NCBI GenBank assembly: GCA_964057225.1
Contig: OZ059898.1
Location: forward strand, 7,130,001-7,194,000
Direction: 5' to 3'
Origin: Auanema rhodensis
Lineage: Eukaryota > Animalia > Nematoda
DNA length: 64,000 nt
Positions 19,849-39,424 of the stretch are shown here, one piece after another. The notes under the pieces were generated by a model. It was not told where the DNA came from. It did no database searches and saw only the letters and a program-made list of their open reading frames with translations. Positions within the stretch are counted from its first letter, which is position 1. Every line of letters starts with the position of its first letter. Position numbers and translations under genes: made by a program.

Positions 19849-21587
19849 TTAACGTTTACGGACTCTTGGAGAGTCTTCAATAAAATTATCAGGAAGAGAA
19901 ATAACTGAAGACATTGTGGACATTGACCTGAAAATATTGCTTTTAAAATATTTGAGGAAGAACTTGAAGTTTTCTGAAAAGGGAACCAGTGATCTCGTGG
20001 TGTAGTGGTTATCACATCTGTCTAACACACAGAAGGCCGGCGGTTCGAGCCCGCCCGAGATCAATAGTTTTTGTTTTTTATGTTTCGGTTTTACACGAAT
20101 TATTTTTATATAATTTAAAAAGTTATTAAACTTTTTAAATTATATAAAAATAATTATATAATTTAAAAAGTTATTAAACTTTTTAAATTATATAATATAT
20201 TACACGAATTATTTTTATATAATTTAAAAAGTTATTAAACTTTTTAAATTATATAAAAATAATTACATTAGAAGATACACCAACCTATAATGATCTACCA
20301 CACTTTCTTCAGCATATCGTCTGGAGGAGAATATTGTATCGAAATGGTAAATATGCCAACTATCCAGAAACCATAGTGTTGATCCATATAAAATACATAA
20401 CAAAGCTGAAGATATGTAAGATTTTGAATAAAAAAAAAAGAAAAATGTTTTATTGCACCTGCCAAACAGGTTATATGAAAACAGAATGATAACCGGAAAA
20501 GAAGAACAGTTGATCCATGTTCAGTTGGAAATCGAATAGTCATCTTCCGAGGTATATTACTTATAAAAATAAAATTTCCTTAAAATATAATAATAAATAT
20601 ATAATTATAATTAATTATACCTATTGTAATAAATATTCCTGTGGTTAAAATAGTTTTTGAAAACATATGAGGAAGAAAGCAAAGACATAATAAGCTGATA
20701 CTCCATGTACAAAATGAAAACCATAGCATACATCCGGTATAATATCCTTAAAATAAAATACAATTAATTCTCTTATATTATATAATTATAAATATATAAA
20801 AAATAATAATTATTACCTGCAACACGATATTGTCTACCCCAACTAAAGCCATTGGCTGAAAGATATTCCATAACTTTAAGTATTGGATATGGTAATCCTC
20901 TTTTTAATGCATTATCTAGTTCTTTTTCCAATATATGAACTGTAATATAGTTATATTATATTTAAATTATATATTATTATATTATTGATTTTTATTATAT
21001 AGTTACCATCTTTGAAAGATATTCGTTCATTGTATTTCAAAGGACTTTCACCATTTTGATTGACTTCAATACCTTGAATAGTAAAAGAAATATATAAATA
21101 TATATAAAATTATATATAAATTTACTCGTTAATGACATATTCATGAACTGTAAACCAACTCGAACAGTTATATTTGCTTTGATAGTATCAGATGAAAATG
21201 CTTTGAATTGAGCCTGAATTTGTGTATCAGAACGATGCCAGCATGGATGATATATTGAAACTAAAATAATAATTATTATATGATATAGTATATAATTTAT
21301 AAATAATATTATTAATTACCTAATAAAGAACATCCAACAAACATTAAAAATAAAAAGCTGATAGTTGATGAAATTCGACATTTTCGAATACCACTTAATA
21401 TGATTAGATAAGCTATAGATGGAATGAGAAAAATTGAAACTATTCCAACAATACTTGTATCTTAATCATATTTAATTTATATTATTTATAATAAATAAGA
21501 ATAAATACCTAAAGTGACGGGTGTTCGGTTTTCACCATATTGTGTCGGAGCTCCATACTCTCGGAACGCCGTGAACCATCCGAACAT
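19849..21587 (-). CDS. doxa-1: Dual oxidase maturation factor (DUOXA / NIP-moladietz family)
   Basis: N-terminus MFGWFTAFREYGAPTQYGENRTPVT and internal GLPYPILKVMEYLS..GFSWGRQYRVAGYY are family motifs, with several TM segments. The last exon (19849-19927) is joined in phase by a TTTTCAG acceptor. One-to-one orthology to doxa-1 is inferred. Confidence 0.85.
19991..20063 (+). tRNA. tRNA-Val (AAC)
   Basis: Cloverleaf with GATCTCG/CGAGATC acceptor stem, anticodon arm TCTGT-CTAACAC-ACAGA, GGTTCGA T-loop and a downstream T-run terminator. Confidence 0.97.
20098..20264. repeat. Array of three AT-rich palindromes: two 58-bp copies with perfect 27-bp arms and one shorter copy
   Basis: aattatttttatataatttaaaaagtt-atta-aactttttaaattatataaaaataatt occurs at 20098-20155 and 20207-20264, with a truncated copy at about 20154-20195. 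Confidence 0.9.
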
Positions 21588-27129: not shown

Positions 27130-28241
27130 ATGATTCGTGGTTTACTATCTACAAGAACATATGGTAACTTCTATTTTCAATTTTTATAATTGTTTTATAT
27201 TCTTAATATCAAGCTTCTTCAATTGCAAAAGGGGATGTATTCAAGAAGTATTCTTTTGTTCAAGCTTCAAAGAATGATACTGACAAAATAGTGGATTTCT
27301 TATCGCATAGATTCATTAAATTTGAACCACACAGCAAGGTTTCATAATATCATTAGAAATTTATATATTAAGTACCTATCTATTTAGTCTTTGAAACTTA
27401 CACCTAATGATATGAAACCTATAGTGCAATATATTGCTCATAGAAGTTTGTGCCATCCATTCTCTTATCTAATTTATCATAAGGTATGTTTAACTATTAA
27501 ATTTGTCTGTATGTAGTACTTTTGTGACTGCTTGGCGCAATGGTAGCGCGTTCGACTCCAGATCGAAAGGTTGGGCGTTCGATCCGCTCAGTGGTCATAA
27601 TATTTTATCAATATTTCTCTAAATTATATACATTTTTTTATATGGTAACACATGTTTAGGATACATCTGAGCTTGTTGGATGTAGAATGTTTTCCATTGG
27701 ATATAGAGATGAATCCAAAGATGTTAAACCTTTCGAATTAAATGTTGAAGAACTTAATAAGAATGTACTTGTTTTAAGTAATTTTATATTTCTTTTATAA
27801 TCATACTTGTTTATATTTTTAGTTGACACATTGGAAAAAGCTAAATCACACTTTTGGAAGCATGTTGATCCATCAATTGAGAAAGTGATTAGACGAGAAA
27901 TCACATTTGTTGAAAATGCTCATCAGCGTCAAGGAATTGCTAAAGCACTTGCTCATCATGGTTTCGATATTGAAACATTAAAGGTATTATAGTATTATCA
28001 AGAAAAAAATGATAACATAGTATTGATTAGGCTCAAAATTTTGGTGGCTTTGTATCAGAAGCATCATCAATTGCTAATCAAACATTGTTAGAAAAACAAG
28101 GTTATCAGTGCTTATATGAATCAGATTTAAGGCTAAAGGTATTTTTCCTTATAATTTGCCTTTCTTCATTATTTTTTTCTATTTCAGATGGATGATGGAA
28201 CAGATTGTATTAAAGTATACTTCAAAGATATTAGAAAATAA
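27130..28241 (+). CDS. GNAT-family N-acetyltransferase (AANAT-like)
   Basis: The spliced product has ..RFIKFEPHSKSL.., the acetyl-CoA motif A (ITFVENAHQRQGIAKAL) and motif B (SEASSIANQTLLEKQGYQ). Introns are canonical. Confidence 0.85.
27526..27597 (+). tRNA. tRNA-Trp (CCA), inside an intron of the GNAT gene
   Basis: GACTGCT..AGTGGTC acceptor stem, anticodon arm TTCGA-CTCCAGA-TCGAA, GTTCGA T-loop. Confidence 0.97.
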
Positions 28242-28559: not shown

Positions 28560-31500
28560 TTAGGCAGCTTTATCTTCTACAGCATACTGTCTAATGATTT
28601 GAATGGGTTTTCTACGTTCTGTAGCTGGATTTGGAATTCCACGTTCATGTTTTCGAATGTATTCTTCTACTTTTCCTCTGCTGATACCCGTAGGAAGACT
28701 GGCTTTACGTTGCAATAAAGCTGAACCACGACGTTGACGGCCAGGTGATATGGATCGGCTTTTTTCACTCTGAAGACAAGTAAAATATAAACAAAAACTT
28801 CAATAATAAAGGAGAATCATGCTATAATATGAGGTATTTTCTCTACTTTCTATACAATAGAACTTGTATTCTAAGCATTAAATGAAGCTTCATGCAACGT
28901 AAGGTTTACTAACTATGCTTTATGAAAAATTAATATTTGAAATAAGCATTAAAAGCCTAATTAAATTAAGTTGAAGCATTAATATGTCAGTATTACAAGC
29001 ATAAAGAAATTTTAAAATAAAGTAGCAAACCTAGCATGTTTAGCTGTCTCATTTCAAATCTGAGACGTATTTCATCTGAAACTTTGAATTAATATAAAGA
29101 ATATGTGTGTATATCTATATATGCATTCTGAAATTTTATAATCAAAAAGTTTCTTACCGTACTAACTAATTGGTCTCCCTCTTCTTCAATATCATCAGTA
29201 TTATGTGTTTCTTTATGTCTAAATATGAATTTATTAGTTTAAATGATTATTTAAAATATTTTACAATTGATGTAATCTACTGATCTTTCTTCGACCTCTT
29301 GTTGACGAACGTTTTCTAATATTAGGTACAGAATCTACGAAGAAACCTCTTCTCTCGGATGGTCGGTCAGTTCTGAAGAGAAATTAGATAAAAGTTATAA
29401 GAAGACGTTTTATCCAAAACGAATAGAACCACTAGTTTGGTTATACTCAGTTTTTGAATTGGGTTTGTCATTTACTTGAAAGGTTCAACTTCGCGACTGG
29501 ACAAGGGTGCTGCAGCACAGACTGGAAGAAATTGAGTTTTGTTATTCCTATACTCATCCAGCCGTCGAGCAATTTTTAAATAAGAATCATCTGTTTGTAT
29601 AATAACTTCCTATAATTTATATAAATTAGAAAAAAAATTGAAAAAAGTTTCAAACTTGACGTAAATCATCATCATAAATACTATTTCCTAGTCCGGATGT
29701 AGAACTTGAACGAGCACGATGTCTATACAGAATAATTCTTGAAATAGTTTTGTTGTTTTAAACTAACGTTACTCCAAGACTAGTACTTCCAATCATGCTA
29801 CAAACAGCAGATCGACACATCCGACTGTCCATACTGTCACACATTTGCAATCGTTCATCATTACCTTCGTGACATTCTCTGAATAATAAATGATAAACAA
29901 ACGTTGAAAGTAAAAAATAAACTTGAAATCTGTTTCACAGCTGCTAGCAACACTACGCGTTGCATATTTCTTATCAGTTTCGCCGTCTGTTTGAATCATA
30001 GTTGTCCTAGTTGTCTGAATAATTGGTGAGGTTGTACGGTCAGTATTCTCACGACATGAAGTTTGAATTGAGCGATCAGCTTGTGATACATCAGACTGAA
30101 AATGAATAAACAATAATAAATTATAATTAAAAATTGAAAAGTTCACCTCATCAGTCGCCATAGTCTTTGATACTAAACCTAGATCAGTAGAAGTACTAGC
30201 TGATGATTGCGGTACTGTAGTTTCATGAATGGAAGTTTGAATTGACCGATCATGCCCATCAGGTTTTTCATTTTCACGTAAAGATGTTTGAATAGAACGA
30301 TCATTATAGACATTATCATAACTTTCAGAAGACATTAATGTTTTTGAACCAAGTTTTTCTTTTAAATTATTGTTTAAAGGAATAGGAGATGTAATAGCAT
30401 TTGTTCTATTAATTTCATCCGTAGCAATAGAACGATCAACATTATAATGTCTGAAATAGTTTCTTTATCTTAATTAAAATAAATAATTTCGAACATACAT
30501 TGATGTTTCTACACTTTTATCTCGCATGTCATATTCTGCATCAACACTTGTAGATATCAAATTAGAAAATCTTGCATCCGTAGCACGATTCTGTAACAAA
30601 TTTGTGCTGAAGAAAGTTATTTGGGGGAAAAAACGTCAAACCTGAAGTTGTTGAGTAAAAATAGGATCAGTGCCTCGACTATGTGTTGAGTAGATAGATG
30701 TGTTCATACCTTGATCCTAAATTATTTCACATAATATTATAAAAATATAATATATACATACAACATTCCATCTTTCATCCATACTTCCACTCATTACACT
30801 AAGAACTTCAGCCATTATCTCACGATCCTGTAAGATAAAATAAGAATAGAAGTATTAATAAACTATTTATTACAGTAAATTCACGCTTAGCATCGACTTC
30901 GCTCAAAAATAGTTGAGAACTTGATAAACCAGCGGATGATGTACTTCTATCCACTAACAATGGATTTACCTTTGAGCTCTAATAAATTCATTTTTAATTC
31001 AAAATATAATATTCAGAGTTAAAACCTGTAAAGCTGCTAATCTTAGTATAATTTCATCCAGTTGAAACTGAGCAATATCTGTTTGAACCTCTTGAGATAC
31101 TCCATAATGTTGTTGTTGTTTTGAACAATTTTGACAATGATCTCCATGTTGTTGCTGTTTCTCTGCTCGAGCAGATTTACATTGCAAACTTTAAATATTT
31201 GTATCATTTTATAAAATAAATATTTATATTAACCTTATAGAATCCATTGGTAAACTAGTAGCATCAGAAATAGAATCTTGATCATCAAATGCTATATCTC
31301 TGAGAGGAATTACTTCATCAACATTCGTATGTTGATGAGACCATTGTGTTTCTTGATGTTGAGGTAGAGCCATACTAATTGGATCACAAGCCATGCTCTG
31401 AAAATAAATTCAATTAATATAGTTTTAAGATAATTATCATATATATTTTATTACAAATTAGAAAAGATAGCTTACATTAGCAGTAGCTTGAACTTGTGTT

Positions 31501-35762: not shown

Positions 35763-36303
35763 TCTGAAATGAACTATGAAAAATTGAATTAAATCAATAA
35801 ATCTATAAAATAATTAAGTTAAAAGAAGTGAACTTACTTCTATGTGAGGCTTAGTTGGGTGACACCGATGGCAGTAAACAATAAAAGTGTAAGACGGCTG
35901 GTCCATTTGCATATCACTCTTACCGCCAACCTAGTATCGATAGATTACATATAGTAAAGCAAAATTCTATTTTGGTTGAATGGAATCAATGAAATATTAA
36001 TGAATGAAGTAGCAGCTAAATTATTTTATTTTAAAAAAAGTTGACAAATTCCGAAGTATAAGAATAGAATTTCTGTATAAGTTGTAGCTTTTGATGCTCT
36101 AACCTATTTAATCAAATAAGATACTCTTCAAATTTAATTTAATTTGAATAAAAATAAGAAATAAACAAATAAATAAAAGCATAAATATTATATTATTATA
36201 TACCATTAAACACATAATATAATATATTAAATTATTAAACAACATCAGATTACTGTAATAAATAAGAAAAATATAAGAAAATCCGAACAGATGATTTTGA
36301 TCC

Positions 36304-37875
36304 CTACGGACTGTTTTCAGGAGTCATTATCGAAAGACTCATTACTCTTCCAATTCTATTTCTTCCCTGAAACAAAAAATTATTAAAATAATATCCTACT
36401 TGACTTCACCTCTTTGAAACATCCACTTATGGAAGAGCAATCTCCCATTGATTCATCTACAAGACTTTTGTGTGAACGTTGACAATCAACAGAGTTTGTT
36501 CTATCTCCATCACAAGCGAATAGCGCTGGCATATAATTATATTTTTATCAGAAAATAATTTCTTACTGATGTTGTTCAAATCGGAGGCTGAATCCGACGT
36601 GGCTGTACCACTATACGTTTCAGTGGCAGCAAATAAATTATGACACATCTAAATTCAATATAACTTTTGAACATTATAAGTTTATAACCCTATCAAGTGT
36701 TCCAACTGTTCCTGCCGTACTTGCCGGATTAGTAATCATGTCCTCTTCATTGTCTACTTCATTATTTCGCTTAAATCAAGTTTGAAATCTTTCTAATATA
36801 CAACGAATACCGTTTCTTCAATAGCATCAGGGATTTCACTCACAGTTTCCTCACATGGCAGATAAACAGATTGCACTTCGAGCATACACGTAAAAAACAA
36901 TACAATTTTTAAAAAAATACAACATCTAATTTATCTGTGATGCGCAGTTGTTAGTTTGATATGAGATAAGTCATACGATAGTGCTCTAGGATCCAAGTTA
37001 TACAACTTATCACATGAGTAAAATCCTTCTGCCTGGTAATGTGGCGGAGCGTCTAAAAGTTATGATAATGTTATCAACGGATGTGTCTTATACCAGATGT
37101 ATATATAATACGAAAGCCAGCATTTTTATTTTCCGGCAGTGGATTTAATATTTTTCTATAAAAACTATTTTTGAACCTAAATCAAGCATATCAAGCTGAC
37201 GTGCAAAGTTCCTTAACCAAGTATAACAACTGTCTAGTATTTTGTTTAACATGCTCAGGTCCTTTATATTTAACAGGAGTTACCAACTCACCACCTCCAC
37301 TAAAAATTAAAATTATAGAATTGCATGTCAACATCTAAACAAATTGCCTTATGAATGATGCTGAAGTGTTTCCATCAGTATAGCACATTTTCCAAGTGTA
37401 TACTTCCACAGCAGAATCTATATCATGCTCATTTTCCCCAACCTAAAAGAAAAATAACAATTTGAGTTATGTTATTAAATATATCTTACCACAAGCATGA
37501 ATGAATCCAGAAATCGTAACTTTATGGCTTCACCAAGCGCGCGAAACTTATTAGCTATGCGCAAACCATATTTATCTTCACTATTCATTACATAGGTTTT
37601 AATAATCCCTACAAAATGTTTTTGGAAGAAAAGAAATATGTTCGATGTTACCTTCAATTGTTTTTTTCTTAAATAAATGACTGGGTAACAACTTTCGTTT
37701 ACAAATAATATATACAAAAACTAGATAAATACAACGCAAAAAAAAGATATCCGAATCGTTTTTTTCCTCAAAGCTTTTAGGAAATGTGTCTTCCCACTAA
37801 AAAAATATTTAACAACTTTCCATTTTATGAAACTACCGTGGAAGTTTTCTTTGATTTTGTTTCTTCTGTAGACAT
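36304..37875 (-). CDS. Meiotic HORMA-domain protein, HIM-3/HTP family (paralog 1, with C-terminal tail); needs one GC-AG and one AT-AC intron
   Basis: WEDTFPKSFEEKNDSDIFFLRCIYLVFVYIICKRKLLPSHLFKKKTIE, ALGEAIKLRFLDSFMLV, EVYTWKMCY, RIIYTSDAPPHYQAEGF and LTTAHHRCMLEVQS follow the HIM-3/Hop1 HORMA pattern. The tail ends GRNRIGRVMSLSIMTPENSP*. Confidence 0.85.
36890..36934 (-). other. 45-nt AT-AC intron in HORMA paralog 1
   Basis: CACAG|ATAAAT...TTTTTTAC|GTGT. Removal deletes an in-frame TAA and yields TTAHHR-CMLEVQS. Confidence 0.75.
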
Positions 37876-38077
37876 TTTGAAACAACCGGTTGGTACTATA
37901 TCAAAATAAAAAATGACAAAGTCCCTGCCTTTTTATTTTCTCATATTCGGTAAATGGCACGTAATATATTATGAAAACAAAGTAAAAATTTTAAAATTCG
38001 GAACATATAAACAATAAGTATATAAAAATCATTTTAAACATTTTAAACATATGGGTCTTCTCAGAAGTAATGATGGA

Positions 38078-39118
38078 TTAAGGAGTAAAATAACTAGTCA
38101 TCACCGTCATAATACCTGTGAAATATATGGAATAGATGTGGAAAAATAGCTGAGCTAAAACCAATATAAACTTTAAAACTTATCTTTCTTTTTTTCCCAC
38201 TTCATAATTGGAACATTCAATAGCATGAGCTATATCATTTAGCAGATAATCGCCACAATCTTCAAAATTAGGTAATTTATAATCCGAAGGAGCATCTAAA
38301 TTATCTCATATAAATGGTAAAATCAAAAACCGAATCAACATATTGAATACTTGACTTGAAAGCTAACTGTCAGTTTCTCAGGTAATTTTTTAAGATTTTC
38401 TCTAAATTGATATCATGAGAAATAAAGAAGAACTGTACAACATTACTTGCATACAGCATTCAAGTATATTAACAAATTCTTCAATTCATTCTTATTAGAA
38501 TCTTCAGCATTTGCTTTTGTTGATAAATTATCATCTTCTCTGAAATTTTCTATTATAAAAAGGTATTATCAAGACATTACTTTTCAGTTGAAACATTATT
38601 GTCTTCGTCATAATGAATTTGAAAGCGAAATACTTCACTAGCCTTAGCAGGATTAGAAGAAACGCCAAGCTGAAATATAAAGTAAAATATTCATAATTGA
38701 AATAAACAGTATTACCACCAATACAAATTCTTCTATATATTTTAATTGTATTGCACGTTTCAAGGATTTGAAAATATTCAACATTTTGAAACAAATATCT
38801 AGTTTACTGTTTAAAGTATAGATGCTTAGTCCAGCTGAAATAAGAAAACAGCTTAAAATATGCCTGAAATACCAAACGTTTTAAAATTATTTTTTTGAAT
38901 GCTTCAGGTGGGAAAATACGTCTTCGTTTCATTATTAATGAAAAAGCTAAATAAATGCTTCTGGTGATATAATGAACAGAAGCGCGATCAGTGTCACCAG
39001 ATTCATTATTCTGAATAATGGACTTATACTTTGGATGACATAGGAGATTAACCTTTTCCAGAAACTTACCCAAATCAATGTTTATTGTCAGTTGACTTGA
39101 TTCGGAAAAATCGGACAT
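38078..39118 (-). CDS. Second, divergent meiotic HORMA-domain protein (paralog 2, essentially HORMA only, ~250 aa); needs one AT-AC intron
   Basis: YITRSIYLAFSLIMKRRRIFPPEAFKK, SLKRAIQLKYIEEFVLV, EVFRFQIHY and VKYSIYAPSDYKLPNF align with paralog 1, and most intron positions and phases are shared. Confidence 0.8.
38118..38183 (-). other. 66-nt AT-AC intron in HORMA paralog 2
   Basis: GAAAG|ATAAGT...TATTTCAC|AGGT. Removal deletes an in-frame TAA and yields KKER-GIMTVMTSYFTP*. Confidence 0.7.
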
Positions 39119-39424
39119 TCTATTTCTGAAGTTAAAAATTTGCTTTCAGAACAATAATGCAGAATAAAGAGAAATTAATGTATATTCAAAAAAAAACGAA
39201 AAAAAGTTTCAAAAGTAATCTGGAACTTTTTCTTAGAATTTTTTTTACATAATCATGAACCTCAAATTTCAAAATATTCTGAAATCTTATTAAAGATTCG
39301 GATAAGCAAAGGAAATTGTTTACAATACAATATTCAGCAAGAGTATATTTTATTGGAATATCCAAACAAAACAATAAACTTATAAAAATCAACAATCTAA
39401 TTAGCTCTATTCATCTAATAACTT

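Follow-up and report, generated by a model that had tools for sequence, protein, structure and literature searches.

The window (the whole stretch of Auanema rhodensis DNA that was analysed, 64,000 nt in length) has a base composition of 24-35% G+C and carries short-intron genes on the minus strand at about 36-44 kb, two of which are HORMA genes. HORMA paralog 2 (38081..39127, minus strand) was modelled from transcript contigs and the reading frame, with 8 exons encoding 237 aa between the ATG at 39118 and a stop codon at 38080-38078; three of its introns (39052-39011, 38580-38540 and 38446-38402) were placed by record arithmetic together with the reading frame. Its SL1 acceptor is a TTCAG at about 39125-39127 on the same strand, upstream of the ATG, where one contig carries the loose letters CAAGTTTG, i.e., the end of the SL1 leader. 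HORMA paralog 1 (36300..37892, minus strand) is HTP-1/HTP-2-like and was modelled from contig joints, with 12 exons encoding 365 aa, an ATG at 37875 and the C-terminal end ...MTPENSP. One paralog-1 intron (37300-37347, minus strand) is of the GC-AG type, with the boundaries ataag/GCAATTTG..TTTTTAG/tgg (here and below, a slash marks a splice boundary), and is skipped in 4/4 runs. The two HORMA genes stand in tandem, tens of bases (about 50-100 nt) apart, and probably form an operon.

In paralog 2, the exon at 38184..38295 (minus strand) encodes a P-S-D-Y-K-L-P-N-F motif, and its frame runs on through ...APSDYKLPNFEDCGDYLLNDIAHAIECSNYEVGKKER (...YEVGKKER) into a TAA. The preliminary description of this DNA had read this AGA TAA as the start of a 66-nt AT-AC intron, and the frame does read ...GKKER and then TAA. 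This intron (38118..38183, minus strand, phase 2) has the donor AG/ATAAGT and the acceptor TTTCAC/A, and the minus-strand letters around it are ...AAAGAAAG/ATAAGTTTTAAAG...CCATATATTTCAC/AGGTATTATGACG, or, with a wider 3′ flank, GAAAG/ATAAGTTTTAAAG...CCATATATTTCAC/AGGTATTATG. When the 66 nt are removed, the frame continues as R-GIMTVMTSYFTP-stop, in which GIMTVMTSYFTP is encoded by the last coding exon (38117..38081, minus strand). The proposed splice is confirmed by the joint 38116->38183, which skips 66 nt in 3/3 runs covering paralog 2 (X1, X2 and X3), as seen in assembled contigs, which are blind to minor isoforms and splicing efficiency. This joint has a 1-nt ambiguity, for which the possible registers are AT..AC (38183..38118) or TA..CA, with no third.

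A second AT-AC intron, also in phase 2, lies at the homologous position of paralog 1 (36890..36934, minus strand), where the frame ...APPHYQAEGF...TTAHHR likewise meets a TAA and the letters are CACAG/ATAAATTAG...GTTTTTTAC/GTGTATGC. This intron is 45 nt long, with the donor AG/ATAAAT and the acceptor TTTTTTAC/G, and the joint 36889->36935 skips these 45 nt in 4/4 runs, leaving AT..AC on the coding strand without ambiguity. Over 207 residues, the two proteins are 26.6% identical (E 4e-20), and their alignment puts the AT-AC introns of both into one column and one phase, phase 2 (R/C vs. R/G). Thus, the shared position and phase that had been proposed earlier for the two introns, which differ in length and sequence, were reproduced by the contig-based protein alignment, in which two more upstream introns also coincide in position and phase between the paralogs.

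The transcript contigs came from four public runs, all of one study, and were mapped onto 36250-39150, over which they contain zero letters differing from the window and skip every intron. The paralog-2 contig ends at about 37927 and the paralog-1 contigs start at about 37892. Because the other introns are skipped at GT-AG ends and one contig carries the end of the SL1 leader, the contigs represent spliced mRNA; the remaining introns listed in both genes are GT-AG, except the one GC-AG intron. From the sequence alone, the two AT-AC splices would have been undecided, since both introns have a length that is a multiple of three and are open except for the TAA, and since each gene offers an in-frame 51-nt GT-AG option. 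These options, GTGGGA..CTCAG in paralog 2 and GTATGA..ATTAG in paralog 1, are unused in the contigs, and either would destroy a conserved protein block. The exact pair ATAAGT...TTTCAC at a spacing of 38-80 nt has 1 occurrence in the 64-kb window, and the relaxed pattern ATAA[GA]T..TTT[CT]AC has 15 matches there, the majority of which fall in AT-rich DNA outside coding regions or on the non-coding strand.

A search with a two-row profile of exon 2 from both paralogs matched eight HORMA proteins among 1.84 billion. One of these is P0001, which NCBI lists as a protein from Auanema sp. JU1783, the nearest public relative found; word-based protein searches with P0001, P0002 and P0005 returned no protein of the window species and no Caenorhabditis member. 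The JU1783 locus L001 (CALQYR020007457.1) is syntenic with the window, carrying an XPD helicase, TACO1, a HORMA gene and then the HORMA gene of P0001. In the JU1783 paralog-1 ortholog, the alignment of P0001 to the DNA leaves out 44 nt at the homologous site, cacag/ATATGCTC...TACTAACTCAATTTAC/atgttc, with the AT-AC ends cacag/ATATGC..CAATTTAC/atg, and the public gene model of P0001 was already built with this AT-AC splice. The JU1783 paralog-2 ortholog reads cacaa/ATAAGTTTTAGG...CCATTTTCAC/aggtaa (acceptor end ATTTTCAC), again with AT-AC ends, and removing these 42 nt gives ...NEDYHK-GKLSVWSQYEKNKRINVTI, which aligns with GIMTVMTSYF of the window and reaches the very stop codon that closes the public gene model. 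For this gene, the AT-AC splice is suggested by sequence and protein conservation. The public JU1783 model containing paralog 2 ends at the downstream stop codon at position 2828, and therefore some splice across the TAA is required. The intron interiors have diverged between the two species and the AT-AC ends have been kept. Since both JU1783 orthologs share these ends, sequencing error as their cause is excluded, in agreement with the preliminary description.

Two further observations were made at the JU1783 locus. The public call at L001 565-2828 fuses a TACO1/YebC-like gene and the paralog-2 HORMA ortholog into a protein of 499 aa, which is probably an annotation error; the window counterparts of the fused genes are separate, the HORMA gene among them with an SL1 site to itself. 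In JU1783 paralog 1, the AT-AC intron includes, within L001 4027-4051, a perfect TACTAAC branch site some 10 nt short of the intron's 3′ end; this yeast-like element is uncommon in nematode introns and may make up for the weak intron ends.

Pfam applied to single exons of the window gave one weak HORMA match, in exon 2 of paralog 2, with an E of 0.011, which is below the Pfam cut-off. For P0001, the paralog-1 ortholog, PF02301 is present, the match to C. elegans HTP-2 (E 4e-24) extends up to the junction, and C. elegans HIM-3 is matched with an E of 3e-17 over the HORMA domain. Across the junction, all relatives carry the block HH[RKGA]/xxxxVxS[IV][YF][IL], which is restored by the AT-AC splice. 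The 13-residue tail of paralog 2 aligns with this family strand block and with the JU1783 ortholog (G.[ML][TS]V.[TS].Y). The AlphaFold model of P0001 (whole-model mean pLDDT 55) has a beta-strand immediately behind the junction, at residues 241-248, where the pLDDT is 71-77. The 13-residue tail is thus predicted, on this model, to be a structural strand of the HORMA domain and not a dispensable extension; a stop at the TAA would lose this beta-strand, and therefore the splice would be needed for a complete protein.

A C-terminal end, ..TPENSP or ..TPG.., is common to paralog 1 and its relatives; paralog 2 lacks such a tail. The HORMA-domain match of its ortholog P0001 and a long tail with a conserved C-terminal end make paralog 1 similar to C. 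elegans HTP-1, HTP-2 and HIM-3 (PDB 4TZL, 4TZO and 4TRK). In contrast to these proteins, the 237-aa paralog 2 is short, stops directly behind its HORMA domain and is evolving at a very high rate. By homology, a meiotic role may be assigned to both paralogs. Between the two Auanema species, the identity of paralog 2 is about 33% (window 38081-39118 vs. L001 1854-2828), and that of paralog 1 is about 55% over the whole protein and 80-88% in the N-terminal exons.

It is very improbable that paralog 2 ends instead at its in-frame TAA (...GKKER), with the downstream sequence being a 3′ UTR that possibly contains an overlapping UTR intron, GTTTTA..CACAG. A canonical GT..AG pair does overlap the site in both species, but 66 nt rather than 64 are missing from the contigs of three runs, so that AG is joined to AGG, and the alignment of the 13-residue tail with the family-wide block and the JU1783 ortholog, together with the beta-strand that the block forms in the model, argues for translation beyond the TAA. 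A minor isoform keeping the TAA or using GTTTTA..CACAG could be hidden in the contigs. Among the outcomes that would speak against the AT-AC splice, the preliminary description had named transcripts stopping at the TAA and transcripts using GAA/GTGGGA..CACAG/, and both were absent from all contigs of the runs covering paralog 2.

The ends of this intron were compared across the HORMA relatives, as the preliminary description had suggested, giving AT-AC in the JU1783 orthologs and GT-AG in all others recorded. At the homologous position, and again in phase 2, GT-AG ends are found in two other JU1783 genes, P0002 (aa/GTTAGT..TATAG/g) and P0009 (aa/GTAAGT..TTGCAG/g), and in Angiostrongylus cantonensis, Pristionchus fissidentatus, Necator americanus and Dictyocaulus viviparus. 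Because GT-AG occurs at the same position in P0002, P0009 and these four other genera, the intron position is old and the AT-AC state is derived. The earlier suggestion of a conserved feature of meiotic axis genes, however, does not hold in general, as JU1783 P0002 and P0009 have GT-AG at the same position. P0002 and P0009 form a second tandem HORMA pair (JU1783 L002 3001-6436), 75% identical and located on another contig, and with it the count of HTP-like HORMA genes in Auanema comes to at least four.

A maximum-likelihood tree contains a branch, with a support of 77/100, that separates the four AT-AC genes from five GT-AG genes; the two paralog-2 genes pair at 93/98 on very long branches. 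Fixation of the AT-AC state most likely preceded the paralog duplication, and the state has persisted ever since. The claim that it predates the duplication is accordingly retained as the most parsimonious one, given that both paralogs are syntenic in two species and that the tree branch is supported at 77/100. The alternative, that AT-AC arose in one paralog and was then copied by gene conversion, or that it arose twice, could draw on the tandem arrangement of the paralogs about 50-100 nt apart and on the support of just 77/100 for the AT-AC group. However, a protein identity of 27% and introns unlike in length and sequence leave no trace of a recent conversion, AT-AC is already present in both paralogs of two species, and two independent double changes at one site are very unlikely, making this alternative quite improbable as a whole.

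The four AT-AC donors are ATAAGT (window paralog 2), ATAAAT (window paralog 1), ATATGC (JU1783 paralog 1) and ATAAGT (JU1783 paralog 2), all of the major type except that A stands where G would be expected, and the acceptors, in the same gene order, are TTTCAC, TTTTAC, ATTTAC and TTTCAC, i.e., nematode acceptors with C replacing G. At positions +2 to +6, the donors match TAAGT at 5/5 in window paralog 2 and JU1783 paralog 2, at 4/5 in window paralog 1 and at 3/5 in JU1783 paralog 1. Thus, the paralog-2 intron of the window, with 5/5 matches and the acceptor TTTCAC, indeed mimics the nematode consensus with its end bases swapped, as described earlier. Compared with the U12 donor ATATCCTT, the donors ATAAGTTT, ATAAATTA, ATATGCTC and ATAAGTTT match at 4-6/8 positions. 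The best matches to the U12 branch site TCCTTRAC in the AT-AC introns reach 4-6/8, and 16 ordinary introns of these genes score no differently. The branch site TCCTTAAC was not found 10-20 nt from the 3′ end of the AT-AC introns; JU1783 paralog 1 carries a TACTAAC of the U2 type in its place. An Rfam scan of the window found no snRNA genes; it found two tRNA genes, at 19991-20063 and 27526-27597, both on the plus strand.

A reading as U12-type (minor-spliceosome) AT-AC introns, or as what remains of such introns, could appeal to the AT-AC termini and to the JU1783 paralog-1 donor ATATGCTC, which matches ATATCCTT at 6/8. This reading is nevertheless extremely improbable in view of the window donors ATAAGT and ATAAAT, the branch-site scores that do not rise above the ordinary-intron background, and the homologous intron of the relatives, which is an ordinary GT-AG intron with GTAAGT-like donors. 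In addition, the Rfam scan of the window was negative for snRNAs, the minor spliceosome has reportedly disappeared from nematodes (PMC10639083; PMC1557818), and C. elegans is without U12-type introns (PMC1557818). Since the minor spliceosome is reported lost in nematodes, we infer that splicing of the Auanema introns depends on U1, U2, U4 and U6. Taken together, the intron is very probably a U2-type (major-spliceosome) AT-AC intron at an old phase-2 position of HTP/HIM-3-like HORMA genes, derived from GT-AG and inherited through duplication and speciation. The comparison of sequences points to the use of the major spliceosome, to a single origin and to the route of change proposed below.

The proposed route starts from a phase-2 intron that members of the nematode HTP/HIM-3-like HORMA family have long carried, mostly with GT-AG ends, just before the exon of a late HORMA beta-strand. 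In the common ancestor of the two Auanema paralogs, A would have replaced G as the first base of the intron and C would have replaced G as its last base, with the rest of the consensus kept (A/TAAGT ... TTTCA/C). The first and last intron bases interact in the second step of splicing, where an A..C pair can replace G..G. If this contact also operates in Auanema in the second catalytic step, the double change would still splice and either single change would splice poorly, because A..C can replace the G..G contact. The route may have gone through GT-AC, nematode acceptors being recognised mainly by their TTTTC tract, and the AT-AC state would then have been inherited via the gene duplication and the subsequent split of the two Auanema species.

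Persistence of the AT-AC ends could also be attributed to selection for a slow or conditional splice, such that germline or sex-specific factors gate the complete HORMA protein. The ends have been kept in four genes of two species despite diverging intron interiors, and an unspliced mRNA would lack the structural strand, both of which are consistent with such selection. However, the in-frame AGA TAA is without meaning of its own, because any phase-2 intron starting with (G/A)TAA yields a TAA there; the stop is a by-product of phase 2 and of the TAA in the donor consensus. Moreover, the AT-AC state can persist without any benefit, because reversion needs two coupled changes. That selection maintains the ends in this way is therefore unlikely, and it is equally doubtful that they act as a selected switch by which both HORMA genes are spliced only under particular germline or sex-specific conditions. 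If such a switch did exist, unspliced mRNA would end at the TAA and yield a HORMA protein without its structural strand, and non-canonical splicing would be tied to the unusual X-chromosome meiosis of the genus.

U2-type AT-AC introns (also called 'AT-AC II' introns) reportedly occur in vertebrate sodium-channel genes. Similar to the Auanema introns, U2-type AT-AC introns have AT..AC ends with the rest of the donor intact (A/TAAGT) and no U12 signals, only the end bases being jointly changed, and in the vertebrate sodium-channel family the AT-AC state is common to paralogs, as in the Auanema HORMA genes. In contrast to the known cases, the Auanema introns occur in a nematode, are very short (42-66 nt) and end in a TTTCA(C) acceptor of the nematode style; their GT-AG ancestor is readable at the same position, and the dependence on the major spliceosome is deduced. 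U12-type AT-AC introns have the AT and AC termini in common with the Auanema introns, but the latter lack the ATATCCTT donor and the TCCTTAAC branch site. Non-AG acceptors are also said to be tolerated in C. elegans, where, as in Auanema, the TTTTC-like tract is kept and the terminal G is missing; in Auanema, however, the first base of the donor is changed as well, producing a compensated A..C pair. By analogy, this likeness suggests that the acceptor may be recognised mainly through its TTTTC-like tract.

SpliceRack covers about 610,000 introns from five model species and records 24 of them as U2-type AT-AC introns (PMC1557818, Sheth et al. 2006), comprising 15 in human, 6 in mouse, 3 in fly, 0 in C. 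elegans and 0 in Arabidopsis (PMC1557818). None of the 94,072 C. elegans introns in that collection is of this type (PMC1557818). A literature search found no paper on nematode AT-AC introns or on HORMA gene splicing in Auanema. The novelty suggested by the preliminary description is thus retained in part: no earlier description of the nematode case was found, but the U2-type AT-AC class is already known and rare. What is new is the presence of AT-AC introns in nematodes; the very rare U2-type AT-AC class to which we assign them is not, and no new mechanism is involved.

The two introns of the window provide an RNA-verified natural pair in a nematode, for which the ancestral GT-AG state is readable in paralogs and in four other genera. 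They are a clean evolutionary example of a coupled change of the first and last bases of an intron, and the resulting AT-AC state has persisted through one duplication and one speciation. For genome annotation, gene finders that accept no intron ends besides GT-AG and GC-AG would end paralog 2 prematurely at the TAA and would divide paralog 1 or splice it wrongly. Auanema is, moreover, a candidate for asking how far the nematode spliceosome tolerates non-canonical intron ends. The direct gain for meiosis research is modest and consists of the correct protein sequences of two divergent HORMA paralogs. Elsewhere in the window, an open frame of 180 codons at 29793-30335 (minus strand) contains a repeated DRSIQTS motif and is possibly an exon of a repeat protein.
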